Origin: Selaginella moellendorffii
Lineage: Eukaryota > Plantae > Lycopodiophyta
DNA length: 64,000 nucleotides
Direction of reading: 5' to 3'
Assembly (NCBI RefSeq): GCF_000143415.4
Contig: NW_003314264.1
Coordinates: forward strand, 3,585,229-3,649,228
Shown: piece by piece, positions 37,648-57,839 of the stretch
Layout of the letters: each line of letters starts with the position of its first letter
Position numbering within the stretch: the first letter of the stretch is position 1
Position numbers and translations under genes: made by a program
Notes under the pieces: generated by a model
The model's database searches: none
What the model was told of the DNA's origin: nothing
Seen by the model: only the letters and a program-made list of their open reading frames with translations

Positions 37648-38384
37648 TCTTAAGGTATACAGGTCAAAGTTTTTACTCTGACAGGAACATAGTTTTTGGA
37701 CTCATTTGCCATAGAGCGCCTTATTTGGTGGAGACATCGTACAGTGAAGTGCTAGAGTCAAATTCCTCGTCTCATATCCCATATGCCCTGCAAACCTAAC
37801 AACGTCTTTCTCCACACCACCATTCCCTTTGAGCGCCAAGTGAACAGTAACATAACCTGGTGAAATTAACTTACAGATAATCCTCATCTTTTTCTCCTTT
37901 AAAACTCAGGACATCTTCAGCTTCTCATCAGTGCCTTGGTTCATCATCCAGGAGCACTCAATCACAGCATCAGTTCAACTTTTGGTACTGTGGTCACTAA
38001 ACGAATAATAGTTGCAGATCCTTTTCCTCCCTTTGCTTGCCTCCACAAACTGTGATGTAATTGGCTTCCACCTTTCACATTCAGTTCTTGCGGGATGCGT
38101 GACACTCATGGGGATTGGGCATTACAGGGTTGACATGCTTGAGAAGTGTGTGGACATGAGCATAATGCTTCCAGACATCACTGGTTGTGGAGAAACTCGC
38201 CAAGACCGCAGTTTAGCCTTTTCGTTAACAGATCAAGGTGTATGTTCTTTTGGTGAGATGGCTGCGAGGAGCTCTGTGATTGGTTATGATCGCTGAACCA
38301 TGCCTAAACCCTAATCTTTTTTCCAAATAACCGAATAAGAATGTTCTTTGGATAAGTGAAAGCGTAACTAGGGTTTAGCAGGCC

Positions 38385-39075
38385 ATGGCGATCTTGTACT
38401 TTGATGGCGCATGCTCGGGCAACGGTACCGGAAACACGGTGGCTGGCTATGGTTTCGTGCTGGTGAGTAAAAAAGGTAACGTGATCTTCGAGGGCTCCGA
38501 CTTCTTTGCATTCGGCACCACAAGCAACCAAGCCGAGTACAGAGGCCTGATTGCGGGTTTGCAAAAGGCACAGGACCTGGGTATTCGCAACATCCACATT
38601 CGAGGGGATTCAGAGCTCGTTGTGAATCAGGTTCTTTGTTTTCGTTTTCCCTGTTCTTTGGACCCGTTGGTTTTCGTTGTAGGTGTTGCAACGTTGGAGG
38701 ACCAGAAACCCATTACTCCAGACGTGCTTAAACTACGTTCACCAGCTTTTGGAAGGAACAAGATGGGAAATTGAACATGTTCCTCGTGAAAGTAATCGAC
38801 ACGCAGATTCGCTTGCACGCCAGGGCCTGTGCAAGACCCAGGAAGATTACTCGTATGGAAGAGAAGAAATCGTACTGAATTGCCAGGAAGAGGACAGTGC
38901 CTGGCTGTACGTGTTGAGCCAACGTGTGCACGGATACTGGAGAATACGCTACATTCTGGATGTTCTTCAAGAGGAGGTCCCACACGTTTTCAATCAAGTT
39001 CTGGATCGAGCCGATGAACTACAGAACGAGGAGGATCCTGAATGTTGTACAACATGTCTTCTGGTTATGTCCTAA
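38385..39075 (+). CDS. Ribonuclease HI-like protein (archaeal/RVT_3 type); exons 38385-38630, 38683-39075
   Basis: YFDGA, TSNQAEYRGLI, IRGDSELVVNQ|V, HVPRESNRHADSLA: all four acidic catalytic residues present. Confidence 0.88.
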
Positions 39076-49851: not shown

Positions 49852-50542
49852 CCGTACAGCAACTTACAGTGGAAATTTCGCGGGTATAAAAAGGGATTCC
49901 AATGAGCTAAGTGCGCGTACGTCAGTGCTGGGATTGAATGCAATGGATTGGCCAACACATTGTCGTGAGTGTCCGGAAAAGAGAAAGAGCGCACCACGCA
50001 ATTTGTGATCGCCCCAAATTCCATGTCAATCCCTTCGACTCTATGTTGGTGTGCATACGGACGATACGGAAAAGAAGAAGCAAAAAACTATGGAAGCCTT
50101 GTAGTGCCATGCGCATCGCAAATTGCTCGCTTTGCCCTCTCAGTGACGTACGTAGTCCGGCCATGTGCCCCATTGCGAGATTTCTTAACAAGAATTTATA
50201 GTTTCCCAGTGCTATCCGTACACAGGGCGCTGGATGGATGGAACCCTAATCTCGGAACAACGCAAAAGCAAAGTGGAAATGGCCAAGTGTCGCATTTATG
50301 CCATGGCCGTGTCGCATGTGACAGCCGTACGAAACGGCACCTCTCGGGCCTGGCCCAAAACCCAGCCCCACGGGAACCAGTCCGTACCGGCCCCCCAATT
50401 GTACGGCGCACGCGGACATGAGGGCTTGCACCGGCCGTACAAGACCCACCGCCCCTCCCTGCGGTGTTCGTACAGCATTTAAAAGGGTGTGGCCGTACAG
50501 AATACGGAAGTGGCCACGTTAGGGTTGAGCGGGAGCGTACGG
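49852..50542. promoter_or_regulatory. Cluster of 11 GTAC (CGTAC) SBP-domain binding cores
   Basis: GTAC at 49854, 49917, 50148, 50218, 50327, 50384, 50401, 50437, 50470, 50495, 50537. Confidence 0.7.
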
Positions 50543-50888: not shown

Positions 50889-53082
50889 ATGATGGGTCAG
50901 CAGCCGCAGCAAATGGTGGGGATTCACCACCATCACCACCTCCACCACCACGAATCCGAGCAGCAGCCGATTGTCGTGGACCAGCAGCACAAGCAGCAGC
51001 ACCACCATCACCACCAACACCACCACCACCACCAGCAGCTCATGGAGGAGGAATCCGGCCAGGCAGGAGGAGGAGGAGAGGGCCTCCCGGAAGACGAGGA
51101 AGACGTGGAGGAGGATCCCGAGGACGACGATCCCGCCGAGCTCGCCGCGGCAGTGCCATCCTCGGGCGCCATCGGCGAGGGGATGGCTCCCGGCAATGCT
51201 GACGCCGCCAATCTTGTCCCGGTTCTGGGAGTGGATTCCTCGCGGAGGCAGCACCAGCGACCAAGAGGAGGAGGAGGTAGCGGTGGTGGTGGTGGTGGTG
51301 GAGGAGGAGGAATCTCGAGTTCTTCGTCGGGGTCTGGCGGAGCTGCTACAGCGGTGGTGGTGGCCGCCGCCGCCGCCGCGGCGGGGCTCCAGATGCCTGT
51401 TCTTCCAGTTCCTTGCTGCCGAGTGGATGGTTGTGGCGAGGATCTGTCCACTGCCGGGGATTACCACCGGCGGCACAAGGTTTGCAAGCTGCATGCTACG
51501 TTGCCCAAGGTCATGAATCACGGCCAGGAGCAAAGATTCTGCCAACAATGCAGCAGGTTGGATCTCTCCTCCATATTTTTTCTCTCTTGCGTTTCATTTC
51601 TTCTTTGTTCTTCTTTCCAATCTTTGATAGCGAGAGTGGAATGATTTTTTTTGGCGTGTGTTTCTTTGCATGCTTGTGCTTGCTTGATCCAGTGATCACT
51701 GACAGAAAGATTTTTCTCTCGGTTGAGTTGGCTGATTTTTTTTCTGGTGGCTACTTTCAGATTTCATTCCTTGTCGGAGTTTGACGAAGGCAAGCGGAGC
51801 TGCCGGAAGCGCCTGGCGGGGCACAACGAGCGGAGGCGGAGGCACCAACCGGATTCGCTCGCCACAACTTCCAGTGAAAGTCCTCCATTAACTCAGGGTA
51901 GGCTTTCTCCGCTCTCTTGCATATTCATGAGTTCAAGTCTCTTCTCTCTTTTTTTCTGCGTGTACGGAAGTTCCTTTTTTTTTTGTGATCGTCTTTGGTC
52001 CCTTTTCCTCATCTATTTTTGGTTTTCAGGCCGGGAGAGCAATAAAAAGCCGCGAGAGTGGAAAGGGCGTGGAAGGGGAGGGAGGAGAGGACGAAGTGGG
52101 CTATCCTTCTCCGCACGGGGACCCGGAGACGACCCGAGCAGCCCCCTCGTCTTGCGAGACGAAATCCAGAGTATGTCCTCTAAGCGAAGAGCGGTGAAGT
52201 CAGGTGAAGAGTCATTCTCCATCATTTTCAATGATGCATTCCCAGAGCGTGACAGTGTCAAGGGTAAAATGAGCCTTCGAGTAGCAGACATGATGGAGAA
52301 GAGAGTTGCCGGAGAGTATAAGGAGATTGACGAGCTTGATATTGATATAGCAGACATGGAGCAAGTCAAGGAGGGGCTCGACCTGGGTGAAGGCGTCGTC
52401 ATACCTCCGCTGCCGCTCAAAAGGGACGGGAAGCTGTCGGTGCTCAAAGGCTGGCCACCCCAGGAAGGCGCAGTGCTCAACCCGGACGAGATGCAAATCG
52501 AGACGAGCCTGACACCAAAAGACGAGCTTGAGAACAAGCGAGCATGGCAGAGAGGTACGCTCTTTTTCCTTCGATGTTGTTCTAAACCGCCAACTCGTTC
52601 GTTGCACAGATGACAAAGAGACGCTGCTCCACTGCTTCTGGGAGTGCTCCAAAGTCCAGCCGGTGTGGAGATGGGCCGCGAGGCAGCTGAGCAAGCTCCG
52701 GGGCAGTAAGGTGAAGCTGGAGCTCCGGCAGGCGGTGTTCGGCGGGAAGCTGGATAGCTGGGCCTCGCAGGAGAACGTTTCGGTGTGGAAGCTGTTGCGG
52801 GGGATCATCCTCTGGCAGATATGGTTGGCAAGGAAGGGGAAGGCCTTGTCCGGGATCCAGTGGACTTCGAACAAGGTGATCCGGGCGGCGTGGGTGGACC
52901 TGATGATGTACGCCATGCAGGATTGGCTGGAAGTTTACAAGAAGAAGGAGACCGGCAAGATGGAAGACGCTCACGAGCTGCGCGGGAAGTTCGATTCCAA
53001 GTGGCTGGTGAACCAGTTTGCTGGGAAACGGGCCGAGTGGAGCATGGTTTGGAAGGATCCCGACGACGTTTTGCTTGATTGA
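50889..53082 (+). CDS. SPL: SBP-box (SPL) transcription factor, predicted fused to a LINE-derived C-terminus; exons 50889-51556, 51761-51897, 52030-52554, 52610-53082
   Basis: [31 protein letters not shown]|[27 protein letters not shown]; downstream exons join in frame at GT-AG sites. Confidence 0.8.
52610..53082 (+). mobile_element. LINE (L1-type) ORF2 C-terminal remnant (zf-RVT and downstream W-rich region)
   Basis: [17 protein letters not shown]; [10 protein letters not shown] resembles the ET..HLF..C and W.IW..RN motifs. Confidence 0.75.
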
Positions 53083-53401: not shown

Positions 53402-53524
53402 AAAGAACGTTTAATCCCTTGTACGAGGGCTGTAACCATAGTTGAAGTGATTGATCCTAAAAATACGGCTTGGGATATAGCAAACATGATTGACCCTCCC
53501 AAGAACGATAGGAAACTTTAGCTT

Positions 53525-54190
53525 CGTCCACTGGAGTTCGCTGCTTTTACAGTCGCCGGGGACTCTTGAAAGTCGAGCCATGGCGGAAGGGAACAACCAA
53601 CACCATCGACGGAGCCGGATCAAGCGAAGCTCTGCAAGGATGGGTGCCGGGCGGATATCAACACGTACGCGTCGTAGTCGACTCTCCCCCGGGCCTGCTG
53701 CTCCACTCTCCAGCTGCTGTTAAGTTTGAAAGCGAGCTCTTAAACCTTCACACACTGAGTCTCCGATAAACCGAAGAGCGCCAGCGCCTCTTGGCAGCTC
53801 TTGTAGCTGCTGTAGGCCGAGAACATCACGTTCCAGGACACCACGCTCCAGCAGTGCGGCAAAGCGGGCGCTCTGGCCGACGCCCGGATCTTCTACCTCG
53901 GCCTCGAGGCCAACAAGCTCGTCGCCAACTTCCTCATCCTCATGTACGGCAAGTGCGAGAGCATCGACCACCCAGGTGTTCGAGCGGATGGAACGACTAC
54001 TCGTACAGCATCATGCTCCAATGCAGGAAAATGCTCTTGCGCACCAGTCACCCGAAGACGGTCAGGCTGATGAGGTCCGAGTTGGAAGGTCCGGAAGCTT
54101 GCCCATTCTACGGCCTCTTCGCGAAGCTCGCTCGCTCTTCGACGAGCGCAACGTTGTCTCCTGGACCACCATGGTCGAGAACGGCCCATC
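53525..54190 (+). pseudogene. Deleted, frameshifted copy of the PPR gene at 56034
   Basis: Blocks such as aagtcgagccatggcggaaggga and aagctcgtcgccaacttcctcatcctcatgtacggcaagtgc are shared with 56128-56390. Confidence 0.85.
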
Positions 54191-54224
54191 TTCGTGTCCT
54201 ACGCTAGGCTGCACCACAGTCATG

Positions 54225-54335
54225 ACGTACACGCGCTCGCTCTCGGCCTCCTCCGCTCCCCCGCTCTGCTCGAACCGGCGAAGCGAGCGGCAGTGAAGCA
54301 GCATGCTGCGACAGTCTCGAGCATCATGGCTCGAG
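54225..54335 (-). pseudogene. Inverted fragment of AOX exon 3
   Basis: RAMMLETVA / [16 protein letters not shown] / AEEAESER match 58900-59040. Confidence 0.85.
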
Positions 54336-54442
54336 TAGCTTGGTAATGGTTTACTGTACTGAACCTTCTTTTGTTTTCCACTCTAGAATAACTCTTGGCT
54401 ATTGGAACTAAACACTTCTCAAGCACTACAAACCCTTGGTCA

Positions 54443-55039
54443 TCACACCTGAATAACATCACGATCTGGATAGTTCACGAACAAATCGTACTCGTCCGGC
54501 GGGATCATCCTGGTGTCGACTCCAGCCTTGAGCACCTTGAGATTGTTCTCAGCGTCGGTGCGAACTTCCATCAGCATTCCGCGGATGGTCGGCCCGATCA
54601 CGTCGCGAACCTCGTACGAAATGTTGAAATTGAAGGCGGTATCGCACACGTCCTTGCGCACCTCCTCGCCGTAGTCAGGCCGCTCCCACCTGTAAAAGGT
54701 GACGCGGAACCCCCTGGACAGGAGCACGCCAAAGAGGAGGTAAGGCCCGTCGTTCTTGTCCATCTCCCTGTCCAGGCACTCGTACATGTCATAAGGGGTG
54801 CGGCCACAGAGAAAGATGACATCGCCATCCCGCTTGCCCTCGAGCTCGCCACTGCGCAGTGATCAGGAGGACTATGGAAGTTCTTCTTACCTGTAGACAA
54901 TCACTCTTGATACATAGCCAGTCAGGAAGCCCACGGGATCTTTCCAGTAATCAGGAAGACCCAGTTCCTTGATCTTCCAGCTCTTATCGCCCAGCACATT
55001 ATCCGGAGTTACCAGATCCTTGAGACTCACGAACCCCAT
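54443..55039 (-). CDS. Unknown 185-aa protein; exons 55039-54891, 54851-54443
   Basis: ATG, a 39-nt GT-AG intron containing a stop, in-frame join and GC3-biased codons: MGFVSLKDLVTPDNVLGDKSWKIKELGLPDYWKDP...GPYLLFGVLLSRGFRVTFYRWERP...DRDVIQV*. Confidence 0.7.
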
Positions 55040-55059: not shown

Positions 55060-55335
55060 ATCATTGCTGTTATAAGTCTAGTCTACTCTCGTGAATTTAT
55101 CAAAGAACTGATTTGGTCCCTCTCATCACAGGAAAATCACTTCGTCCTCGTCCATCGCAAGTGATAGACGCTACATTGGGATTGAGCTTGCGAGCTTTCA
55201 CTCCAGCACAGGCAGCTCGCGGCATATCCTTCTGGACCTTGGCAGCGGCGAGCCAGGGCATTCAAGATGGCGCGGCATGGTATCTGCAAGGTCCTCGGCC
55301 TAGCATCCCGGCTCGGGTGACTCGGAGGTGATGGA
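55060..55335 (-). pseudogene. Inverted fragment of the 3' end of the PPR gene at 56034-57839
   Basis: Reverse complement matches ctcgccgctgccaaggtccag..gatatgccgcgagctgcc..aagctcgcaagctcaatcc (57657-57731). Confidence 0.85.
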
Positions 55336-55420
55336 AAGAAGATGCCGAACGCTGACCTCGTCCGGTAGCAGGACGAGATGCTCAAAGGCGATGGAGTGTT
55401 TGGAGTATTTCCCTTGTCAG

Positions 55421-55750
55421 CTAGAGCTCCGGCAGGCGGTCTTCGGTGGGAAGCTGGATAGCTGGGCCTCTCAGGAGAATGTTTCGGTGTGGAAGCTCTT
55501 GCGCCCTCGGGCAGATATGGTTGGCGGGGAAAGACCTTGTCCGGGATCCAATGGACTTCAAACAAGGTGATCCGGGCGGCGTGGGCGGACCTGATGATGT
55601 ACGAGATGCAGAACTGGCTGAAAGTTTACAAGAAGAAGGAGACCAGCAAGATGGAAGACTGCACGGCAAGTTCGACTCCAAGTGGCTGGTGAACCAGTTT
55701 GACGGCCCGAGTACAGCATGGTTTGACAGGGTCCCGACGACAATTGACAG
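55421..55750 (+). mobile_element. Second, frameshifted copy of the LINE remnant
   Basis: Near-identical to 52717-53090 but with small deletions breaking the frame. Confidence 0.85.
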
Positions 55751-56033
55751 GGACGCTCACTCCAAGAACAGTATGAGCAGAGAAGCAGGAGCTTACAGCG
55801 TTAGCAGCAATCCGGACGAGAAAGGACTCGCCTGCTTCGCTCTTTATAACACTTTGTACACACGACGGACAACGATTGTTATACTTACAAAAGATGGTGG
55901 AACGATCAAAGTCGACAGCTAACTGGTAAAAAAATTTCTCCTTCTTCTACAGCTTGGGATCTATAGTTGAAGTGATTGATCCTCCAAAAACAAAGCCTGG
56001 GATATAGGCAAACGTTGCAGAGGAGGATGTAGA

Positions 56034-57839
56034 ATGCGCTATAGATTACTTGCGTCCACTAGAGTTCGCTGCTTCCACCGCCACCACCGACGATCTTACA
56101 GTAGCCTCAGCCGCCGGGGACTCGTGAAAGTCGAGCCATGGCGGAAGGGAAAGACCAACAAGTTCACCATCGACGAGGAGCAGTGTAGGAGCCGGATCAG
56201 GCAGGCGGTGGAGGAGCTCTGCACCGATGGCTGCCGGGCGGACATCAACACGTACGCGTCGCTGCTCCAGCAGTGCGGCAACGCGGGCGCTCTGGCAGAA
56301 GGCAAGCGCGTCCACGCCCGGATCCTCCACCTCGGCCTCGAGGCCGACAAGCTCGTCGCCAACTTCCTCATCCTCATGTACGGCAAGTGCAAGAGCGTCG
56401 ACCTCGCCACCCAGGTGTTCGAGCGGATGCCCAGGCGGAACGACTACTCGTACAGCATCATGCTCCAGGCATTTGCCGACTGCGGGCAAATGCGGCTGGC
56501 GCGGGAAGTCTTTGACAAGATGCCGCTCCAGGCCGATATCTCGTGGACCGCACTCATCTCCGGCTACGCCAAGAACGGCTTCCTGGAGGAGGCCGAGGCG
56601 ATCTTCCGGAAACTCCCCCGCCGCCACTTCGTCGCCTGGACCGCCCTCGTCACAGCGTATGCCCAGAACGGGCAAGCTTCAAAGGCGTTCCGGACCTTCC
56701 AACTCATGGACCTGGACGGCTCCCAGCCCGACTCCATCGCTTTCATCAGCGTCTTGGATGCCTGTGCGACCGTCTTCGCACTCGACGCCGGGAGATTGGT
56801 CCACAGGACAGTGGCGGATGCCGCAGTGAGCCTGGATGCCCGAGTTGTCAACATGCTCATCCACCTTTATGGACGCTGCGGCGCTCTTCGTGAAGCTCGA
56901 TCCCTCTTCGACAAGCTGGACGAGCGCAACGTTGTCTCGTGGACCACCATGGTCGCCGCCTATGCCCAGAACGGCTACCCGGACGAGGCCCGAGCCATCT
57001 TCAATGAGATGCCTCGCCGCAACCTTGTGTCCTGGAACGCCATGGTGACGGCCTACGCCGAGAATGGCCGCGGGAAGAAGGCGCTCGAGATCTTCCGGCT
57101 CATGGACCTGGAAGGCACCCAGGCTGATGGATTCACTTACTTGGGATCGCTGGATGCCTGCTCCACGATCCCAGACCTGGCCTACGGGAGACTCATCCAC
57201 GCCGAGATCCGCGAGAGTCGCAGCTCCGGCGATCCCAAAGTTGGCAACGCGCTGCTCAATCTCTATGCCAAGTGTGGCCACCTCCGGGACGCGGTGGCGC
57301 TGTTCGCAACGATGCCGATGAAGATCCTTGCGGCCTGGAACACCATGATCGGGGCCTTCGCTCAAACCGGCCACGGCAAAGAAGCCATCGAAGTCTTCGA
57401 GCATCTGGCGCTGGAAGGCCTGCTACCGGACGAGATTAGCTTCATCAGTGTTCTCTCCGGCTGTGCCTACGCCGGGATCTTCAAGGACGGGCTCCGGATC
57501 TTCGTTTCCATCACGTCCGACTATGGAGTGACCCGAGTCTACGACCACTTCGTGTGCGCTGTGAACATCCTGTGCCAGGCCGGGATGCTGGAGGAGGCCG
57601 AGGAGCTTGCCGATACCATGCCGTTTGTGACCGACGCCATCCCGTGGATGACTTTGCTCGCCGCTGCCAAGGTCCAGAACGATATGCCGCGAGCTGCCCG
57701 TGCTGGAGAGAAAGCTCGCAAGCTCAATCCTAATGTATCGGCGCCTTACGTGATGCTGTCCAGCGTCTATCACATGCGGCGCCAGCAAGCCGGCGAGAGC
57801 GAAGACGAGGACGAAGAGGTGATCTTGTCCGAAAGGTGA
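56034..57839 (+). CDS. PLS-class PPR protein with E domain and mitochondrial-type presequence, no DYW
   Basis: 601-aa intronless ORF; P/L/S repeats; HFVCAVNILCQAG...WMTLLAAAKVQ. Confidence 0.92.
   Translation: MRYRLLASTRVRCFHRHHRRSYSSLSRRGLVKVEPWRKGKTNKFTIDEEQCRSRIRQAVEELCTDGCRADINTYASLLQQCGNAGALAEGKRVHARILHLGLEADKLVANFLILMYGKCKSVDLATQVFERMPRRNDYSYSIMLQAFADCGQMRLAREVFDKMPLQADISWTALISGYAKNGFLEEAEAIFRKLPRRHFVAWTALVTAYAQNGQASKAFRTFQLMDLDGSQPDSIAFISVLDACATVFALDAGRLVHRTVADAAVSLDARVVNMLIHLYGRCGALREARSLFDKLDERNVVSWTTMVAAYAQNGYPDEARAIFNEMPRRNLVSWNAMVTAYAENGRGKKALEIFRLMDLEGTQADGFTYLGSLDACSTIPDLAYGRLIHAEIRESRSSGDPKVGNALLNLYAKCGHLRDAVALFATMPMKILAAWNTMIGAFAQTGHGKEAIEVFEHLALEGLLPDEISFISVLSGCAYAGIFKDGLRIFVSITSDYGVTRVYDHFVCAVNILCQAGMLEEAEELADTMPFVTDAIPWMTLLAAAKVQNDMPRAARAGEKARKLNPNVSAPYVMLSSVYHMRRQQAGESEDEDEEVILSER

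Follow-up and report, generated by a model that had tools for sequence, protein, structure and literature searches.

Does the SBP-box gene at positions 50889-53082 (+) of this stretch of the Selaginella moellendorffii genome really end in a piece of a retrotransposon, and is that piece a working part of the protein? The stretch, referred to below as the window, is 64,000 nucleotides (nt) long (NCBI RefSeq assembly GCF_000143415.4, contig NW_003314264.1, positions 3,585,229 to 3,649,228). It forms part of scaffold GL377568.1 in GCA_000143415.2, from which the retrieved stretch is identical to the window; two intronless PPR proteins encoded in the window match this scaffold residue for residue, and it is the only scaffold that they retrieved. 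A preliminary description made from the letters alone had proposed that a fragment of a long interspersed nuclear element (LINE) was exonised here, giving a chimeric SBP-box (SPL) protein with a new C-terminus. Our analysis suggests that the locus is, with high probability, an intact SPL gene ending in a LINE open reading frame 2 (ORF2) C-terminal domain that was captured long ago and has been kept by selection.

The gene has four exons and a coding sequence of 1803 nt, corresponding to 600 amino acids. The NCBI annotation of GCA_000143415.2 contains a gene with exactly the bounds 50889-53082 and a 600-residue product, for which there is no Pfam hit on record. The parts of the gene are as follows.

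50889-51556 (+), exon 1: His/Gln-rich and Gly-rich N-terminus, then SBP positions 1-46; ends in phase 2 after ...CQQCS

51557-51760 (+), intron 1: 204 nt, GT-AG, phase 2, within the SBP domain

51761-51897 (+), exon 2: SBP domain, second half, with the basic stretch KRSCRKRL...RRRR

51898-52029 (+), intron 2: 132 nt, GT-AG (donor GT at 51898, acceptor AG at 52028-52029), phase 1

52030-52554 (+), exon 3: 525 nt or 175 codons, a lycophyte-specific linker

52555-52609 (+), intron 3: 55 nt, GT-AG, phase 1, between the host-derived and the LINE-derived parts

52610-53082 (+), exon 4: 156 whole codons, then a TGA stop at 53080-53082; derived from the C-terminal domain of an L1-type ORF2

The protein therefore consists of an N-terminal SBP DNA-binding domain, a linker of about 175 residues that is predicted to be disordered and a helical C-terminal domain of 156 residues. 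The coordinates given in the preliminary description, with donor 51898 joined in frame to acceptor 52029, a 175-codon exon and a 55-nt GT-AG intron, are all borne out by the sequence. Retention of intron 3 shifts the frame: the exon 3 frame meets a TGA at 52611-52613 and the exon 4 frame is open only from 52528. Intron 2 is in frame and contains no stops (the open reading frame 51723-52613 passes through it), so that its retention would add 44 residues to give a 644-residue protein with both domains intact. The annotated product has 600 residues, which implies that intron 2 is spliced out. There is one CCGTAC site in intron 2, at 51962-51967.

The Pfam match to the SBP domain is split between exon 1 (profile positions 1-46, E 1.1e-16, 61.4 bits) and exon 2 (positions 48-74, E 2.7e-9, 37.6 bits), for a gathering cut-off of 27. 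All eight zinc ligands can be read from the exon 1 and exon 2 translations, as C-x4-C-x16-C-x2-H and C-x2-C-x3-H-x11-C, and the bipartite basic nuclear localisation signal KRSCRKRL...RRRR is present at the end of the domain. The gene thus resembles the SBP-box/SPL family (PF03110) in having a complete SBP domain with both zinc sites, the basic nuclear localisation stretch and the family's domain-splitting intron in phase 2. It differs from the family in its C-terminus derived from a LINE ORF2 C-terminal domain, which was found in no SPL beyond Selaginella and Diphasiastrum in the searches run. It also differs from the SPL genes regulated by miR156/miR529, as it has no such site: at three or fewer mismatches there is neither a miR156-type nor a miR529-type site in the whole 64-kilobase (kb) window, which confirms the lack of a miR156-type site reported for the gene earlier. 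There are 19 CCGTAC sites (with the SBP-type GTAC core) in the window, where about 11 would be expected per whole 64 kb, and 7 of the 19 cluster in 327 base pairs (50216-50542) just 5' of the SPL start codon.

What, then, is exon 4? It has no match in Pfam at E <= 0.1, zf-RVT (PF13966) included. The exon starts within the zinc knuckle. Only about the last 17 positions of the zf-RVT profile could be present. A word-index search confined to proteins of similar length found no relatives because of that length limit, and a search of PDB sequences with phmmer gave four weak matches (E 0.02-0.05), all to residues 1139-1162 of the human LINE-1 ORF2 protein (ORF2p). A HMMER search of 1.84 billion cluster representatives gave 137 matches at E <= 1e-3. 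The top two are SBP proteins of the clubmoss Diphasiastrum complanatum, which align without gaps at 66-70% identity (E 1e-61 to 1e-63). The other 135 are not SBP proteins and are 20-40% identical to exon 4 in alignments that span most of the domain; four of them, which align over short stretches only (20-85 residues), reach 42-63%. Seven of the 135 are longer than 600 residues, and the long ones are LINE ORF2 proteins matched at their C-termini, with Exo_endo_phos, RVT_1 and zf-RVT in those sampled. In one of them, P0040 (1442 residues), Exo_endo_phos lies at 6-239, RVT_1 at 550-794 and zf-RVT at 1222-1295, and exon 4 matches 1279-1389, from the end of zf-RVT onwards. Additionally, P0030 and P0081 carry RVT_1 and five other matches carry zf-RVT. 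The named sources of the LINE-like matches include Haematococcus and the liverwort Riccia.

The alignment also shows where the exon begins relative to its LINE relatives. The LINE tails share a C-x2-C-x(6-7)-H-x4-C knuckle, and exon 4 starts between the CxxC pair and the His. It retains the invariant His7 and Cys12 and the series of Trp residues along the whole domain, its net charge is +5 to +8 with 13-14 Trp, and it is without the CxxC half of the CCHC knuckle, leaving His7, Cys12 and a Cys8 that is conserved in the lycophytes. The preliminary description had recognised the end of the zf-RVT motif in this segment. The H...C half of the knuckle is indeed kept, but the family itself goes undetected at the Pfam threshold given above. 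The domain is invisible to Pfam, and this may be the reason that surveys of SBP genes have missed it.

Structure prediction gives the same answer as the sequence alignment. The AlphaFold2 model of exon 4, built from 68 sequences, has a pLDDT of 94.4 and a pTM of 0.88 and is mainly helical with a short hairpin at the end. The best match of this model in the PDB by Foldseek is human ORF2p (probability 0.97, TM 0.51). In VIA-align, the model superimposes on ORF2p 1136-1259 in four entries with Z scores of 8.9-10.1 (rmsd 2.9-3.0 Å over 122-123 residues); helical models often reach middling Z scores, and the next unrelated chain has a Z score of 5.1. The match to the ORF2p fold thus stands above the background, extends over the whole domain and is consistent with the sequence evidence, which identifies exon 4 as a homologue of the C-terminal domain of L1 ORF2p. 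It resembles the L1-type domain (human residues ~1136-1259; PDB 9HDR, 9K6G, 8UW3) in its fold, in its invariant His, Cys and Trp residues and in its sequence homology to plant and algal LINE tails over the whole domain. It differs in having no endonuclease, reverse transcriptase or wrist, in lacking the CxxC half, in belonging to a spliced host gene and in being under purifying selection of the host type. There is no match to an endonuclease or reverse transcriptase in exons 1-3, so no such coding sequence stands beside the tail. Homology and fold are those of a LINE domain, whereas the complete CCHC knuckle and the linkage to reverse transcriptase and endonuclease are absent, and exon 4 is therefore LINE-derived but not a LINE.

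One correction to the preliminary description concerns exons 3 and 4. The LINE origin holds for exon 4, through its homology to ORF2 tails and its ORF2p C-terminal fold, but not for exon 3, which has no LINE similarity. Exon 3 has no match in Pfam, no sequence match in the PDB and no similarity, even at E 1, to the 135 LINE-like proteins. For the same reasons, we rejected the idea that it might be a remnant of the LINE wrist or reverse transcriptase. It aligns only with three Diphasiastrum proteins, at 41-43% identity. Its features are an R/G-rich start (EWKG.GR.G), the motif GL[DE]LG[ED]G..[IL]PPL..KRDG...L..WP and the end AWQ[KR]; Cys and His are both absent from it. When the Diphasiastrum protein is modelled at full length, confidence is high only at the SBP domain (residues ~55-135) and the C-terminal domain (~325-490), with a pLDDT below 50 for residues 149-322. 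On the basis of this model, we read exon 3 as a probable disordered linker with short motifs.

The preliminary description had suggested looking for the fusion in related species, and it is present in D. complanatum, with the same intron positions and phases. There are three loci: O6H91_23G037600 on chromosome 23, O6H91_12G083900 on chromosome 12 and O6H91_05G070000 on chromosome 5, the last found by searching with the non-SBP part of the first Diphasiastrum protein. All three proteins carry the Pfam SBP domain; their C-terminal domains are 66-70% identical to exon 4 without gaps, and their last residue corresponds to that of the Selaginella protein. The two genomic loci examined in detail, L001 (chromosome 23) and L002, have four exons each, with introns of phases 2, 1 and 1 at places that match those in the window: intron 1 follows CQQCS (phase 2), intron 2 lies just before EWKG (phase 1) and intron 3 follows AWQK (phase 1). 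The residues at the last junction are AWQR|DD as predicted for Selaginella, and their Diphasiastrum counterparts, AWQK(E)DD and EWQKGD, align with them without a gap. Intron 3 is 6829 nt long in L001 and 5032 nt long in L002, in comparison with 55 nt in Selaginella. At chromosome 23, one locus tag covers three annotated products (489, 490 and 482 residues), and the two that were inspected join the SBP domain to the tail. There is a NAGNAG tandem acceptor for intron 3 at L001 21255-21260, which accounts for the 489- and 490-residue isoforms, with AWQKDD and AWQKEDD respectively. These annotated products are indirect support for expression of the tail within the host mRNA. The His/Gln runs (50925-51048) and the run of about 13 Gly (51270-51310) in Selaginella exon 1 are absent from the Diphasiastrum proteins, and exon 1 upstream of the SBP domain is mostly unalignable between the two genera. 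The annotated protein of the chromosome 12 locus, P0002, starts with 56 unrelated residues and lacks the first half of the SBP domain, and its LINE-derived domain is fully conserved. Either this model is in error or the chromosome 12 copy has kept the tail but no longer binds DNA.

Exon order, intron positions and intron phases are thus shared between Selaginella and Diphasiastrum, as is expected of a domesticated gene. The presence of the same fusion in Diphasiastrum, with the same intron position and phase, indicates that the capture predates the split between Selaginellales and Lycopodiales. The Lycopodiales are sister to the Isoetales plus Selaginellales, and with this phylogeny the shared fusion is at least as old as the last common ancestor of living lycophytes. 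The exonisation is not a recent event in this genome; it is ancient and shared with Diphasiastrum.

Is the captured domain maintained by selection? Synonymous sites are saturated between Selaginella and Diphasiastrum, which makes the ratio of non-synonymous to synonymous substitution rates (dN/dS, or omega) unusable across the two species. Omega was calculated by the method of Nei and Gojobori between the Diphasiastrum paralogues on chromosomes 23 and 5, for which dS is about 0.5. The values are set out below with the amino acid identity between Selaginella and Diphasiastrum.

Exon 1: omega 0.18; identity 48-49%

Exon 2: omega 0.13; identity 76-84%

Exon 3: omega 0.24; identity 41-43%

Exon 4: omega 0.073; identity 70%

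Exon 4 has the lowest omega of the four exons. There is also an internal neutral control within the window, outside the functional gene:

55419-55948 (+): partial tandem duplicate, in decay, of exon 4 from 52715 onwards and of the gene's 3' flank

This copy is 76% identical to the gene over 641 columns. It starts at the position equivalent to 52715 within exon 4 and spans the stop codon and about 270 nt of the 3' flank. Read in the exon 4 frame, the copy (copy B) is interrupted by five deletions and two in-frame stops; the gene's own 52610-53082 (copy A) is open. When changes are polarised by the Diphasiastrum outgroup, about 9 amino acid changes fall on copy B and 1 on copy A (Gly to Trp, codon 68). 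The low omega of exon 4, together with the decay of the nearby duplicate while the copy in the gene stays open, supports the earlier suggestion that the new C-terminus is under selection.

The preliminary description had treated the copy, placed at 55421, as a duplicate of the LINE segment. The copy is real and its frame is broken where that of the gene is open, but what was duplicated in tandem is the 3' end of the gene itself. Further on lies the start of a PPR gene (56034), to which broken PPR pieces at 53438-54177 correspond. The 3' end of the gene, its flank and the start of the PPR gene were duplicated together, which identifies a partial tandem duplication and not a LINE insertion. We therefore rejected the possibility that 55419 is an independent LINE copy, since it carries the 3' flank of the gene and the neighbouring PPR start.

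Three other explanations of the locus were considered. The fusion could be an artefact of annotation, with the SPL gene ending after the SBP exons or after exon 3 and an open LINE relic joined to it by a chance GT-AG pair. The frames of exons 3 and 4 overlap by only about 85 nt (52528-52613), so that one GT...AG pair could indeed arise by chance, and Pfam is blank in exons 3 and 4. A relic, however, would not stay 70% identical and ungapped to a clubmoss protein when the nearest LINE relatives are at 20-40%, nor would it keep the AWQ[K/R]|D junction or the intron phase, and an omega of 0.07 is not expected of it. The copy that truly is unselected, 2.7 kb away, has already broken up. We consider an artefact very improbable. 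Somewhat less remote, but still improbable, is that exons 3 and 4 form a separate gene with its own start that lies beside the SPL gene in both lycophytes. There are internal Met codons in exon 3 from which such a gene might start, and the P0002 model without the first half of the SBP domain shows that the integrity of this domain is not kept in every annotated model. Against this, no Met position in exon 3 is common to Selaginella and Diphasiastrum, and the SBP exons lie upstream at four of four loci in the two species. Exons 2 and 3 are only 132 nt apart in Selaginella, in a stretch that is open in frame, and intron 2 is in phase 1 in both species, so that the frames stay compatible. Additionally, the products at chromosome 23 belong to one locus tag, and both of those inspected join the SBP domain to the tail.

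A third explanation, which we regard as the least probable of all, is that a young Selaginella LINE fragment was exonised recently and that Diphasiastrum has a matching one through parallel capture or horizontal transfer. LINE tails are plentiful as raw material and there is a similar second copy nearby. That copy, however, is a segmental duplicate of the 3' end of the gene with its flank and the PPR start, and there is no LINE-like match to exon 4 above about 40% identity where most of the domain aligns. Exon 3 and the junction are likewise shared with Diphasiastrum, as are the positions and phases of all introns, and the synonymous sites of the two species are saturated.

The remaining explanation, an SPL gene with an anciently captured and selectively maintained LINE tail, has to be set against several observations that do not favour it. 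The fusion has been found in two lycophyte genera only, other lycophytes being poorly represented in the databases. Splicing in Selaginella is predicted from comparative evidence and from the public gene model, and the protein searches retrieved no Selaginella protein with the exon 4 domain, despite the presence of the gene in the genome record. There is no zf-RVT match in exon 4 by Pfam (E <= 0.1). Finally, the CCHC knuckle is without its first two Cys, for which exon 3 offers no Cys or His as a substitute.

The data establish how the gene is built, that exon 4 descends from a LINE, how old this exon is and that it is constrained. How the capture came about can be proposed in outline. LINE insertions are commonly truncated at the 5' end. 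Most likely, before the split between Selaginellales and Lycopodiales, an ancestral SPL gene received a 5'-truncated LINE copy at its 3' end, in the sense orientation. A splice acceptor within the zinc knuckle of the LINE would have joined the tail to the host frame through a phase 1 intron, and the LINE tail would have supplied both an open frame and a new stop codon. Purifying selection would thereafter have kept the tail as a domain of the host protein.

The SBP domain would be expected to bring the protein to promoter sites with a GTAC core. The exon 4 domain has lost the CxxC half but has kept the whole helical body, the net positive charge and the conserved Trp core. Its role is most likely an accessory one, either in binding single-stranded nucleic acid or in docking a partner protein. 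The C-terminal domain of human L1 wedges its zinc finger into the target DNA, melts the target and holds the single strand along its surface (PMC7617806); an earlier structural paper described the role of the ORF2p domain as unclear, yet the domain as required for retrotransposition (PMC10830420). With the CxxC pair missing and no Cys or His in exon 3, the DNA-wedging activity of the parent domain has probably been lost. Binding of nucleic acid by the exon 4 domain is a reasonable possibility, to which we would give slightly less than an even chance. It is a good deal more speculative, and on balance unlikely, that the captured domain still grips single-stranded nucleic acid as a second contact (melted DNA, R-loops or RNA) or competes with LINE ORF2p for substrates. 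If it does compete with ORF2p, a developmental transcription factor would double as a brake on retrotransposition. If either were true, a LINE ORF2 domain would for the first time have been domesticated to a defined role in its host, and it would have persisted since the lycophyte orders diverged in the Devonian.

To our knowledge, the transposon proteins captured by hosts come almost entirely from DNA transposases and from the gag and env of retroviruses and long terminal repeat elements. L1TD1, from LINE-1 ORF1, has been called the only known domesticated protein-coding gene derived from L1 (PMC4161310, PMC11014241). It is like the Selaginella gene in being a host protein-coding gene made from a LINE protein domain and kept by selection. 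L1TD1, however, comes from ORF1p and is a stand-alone RNA-binding protein of mammals, whereas the present case concerns a plant host, with the C-terminal domain of ORF2p as the donated part and a DNA-binding transcription factor as its fusion partner. Plants have transcription regulators derived from transposases, FHY3/FAR1 (from Mutator) and DAYSLEEPER (from hAT), and these are comparable in that transposon-derived domains are found in plant regulators of transcription. Those proteins derive from a transposon as a whole, and it is the transposase that gives them their DNA-binding domain; here the host SBP domain binds DNA and the LINE gives an accessory exon only. A literature search found no paper linking SBP genes with zf-RVT.

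The locus represents a new, lineage-specific class of SPL protein. In this class, a plant transcription factor of development has carried an ORF2 C-terminal domain as a conserved exon from before the earliest divergence among living lycophytes. The role of this domain within the transposon itself has been clarified only recently, by cryo-electron microscopy, and the fusion is a natural experiment on what the domain can do apart from its reverse transcriptase.

The neighbourhood of the gene shows the further course of the tandem duplication. It included the 5' part of the PPR gene 56034-57839 (53438-54177 corresponds to 55963-56955), and the first PPR copy is now in short frames. Decay has been reciprocal: unit 1 keeps the SPL tail intact and unit 2 keeps the PPR gene intact. 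There is also an inverted piece of the PPR C-terminus (55169-55312 against 57740-57579). An annotated gene for a 290-residue product with no Pfam hit lies between the duplicate units at 54062-55039 (-), with an open frame at 54443-54787 (-) inside it. Elsewhere in the window, an annotated gene at ~38108-39075 (+) encodes 257 residues with RNase_H and RVT_3 matches, a domain of the retroelement type.

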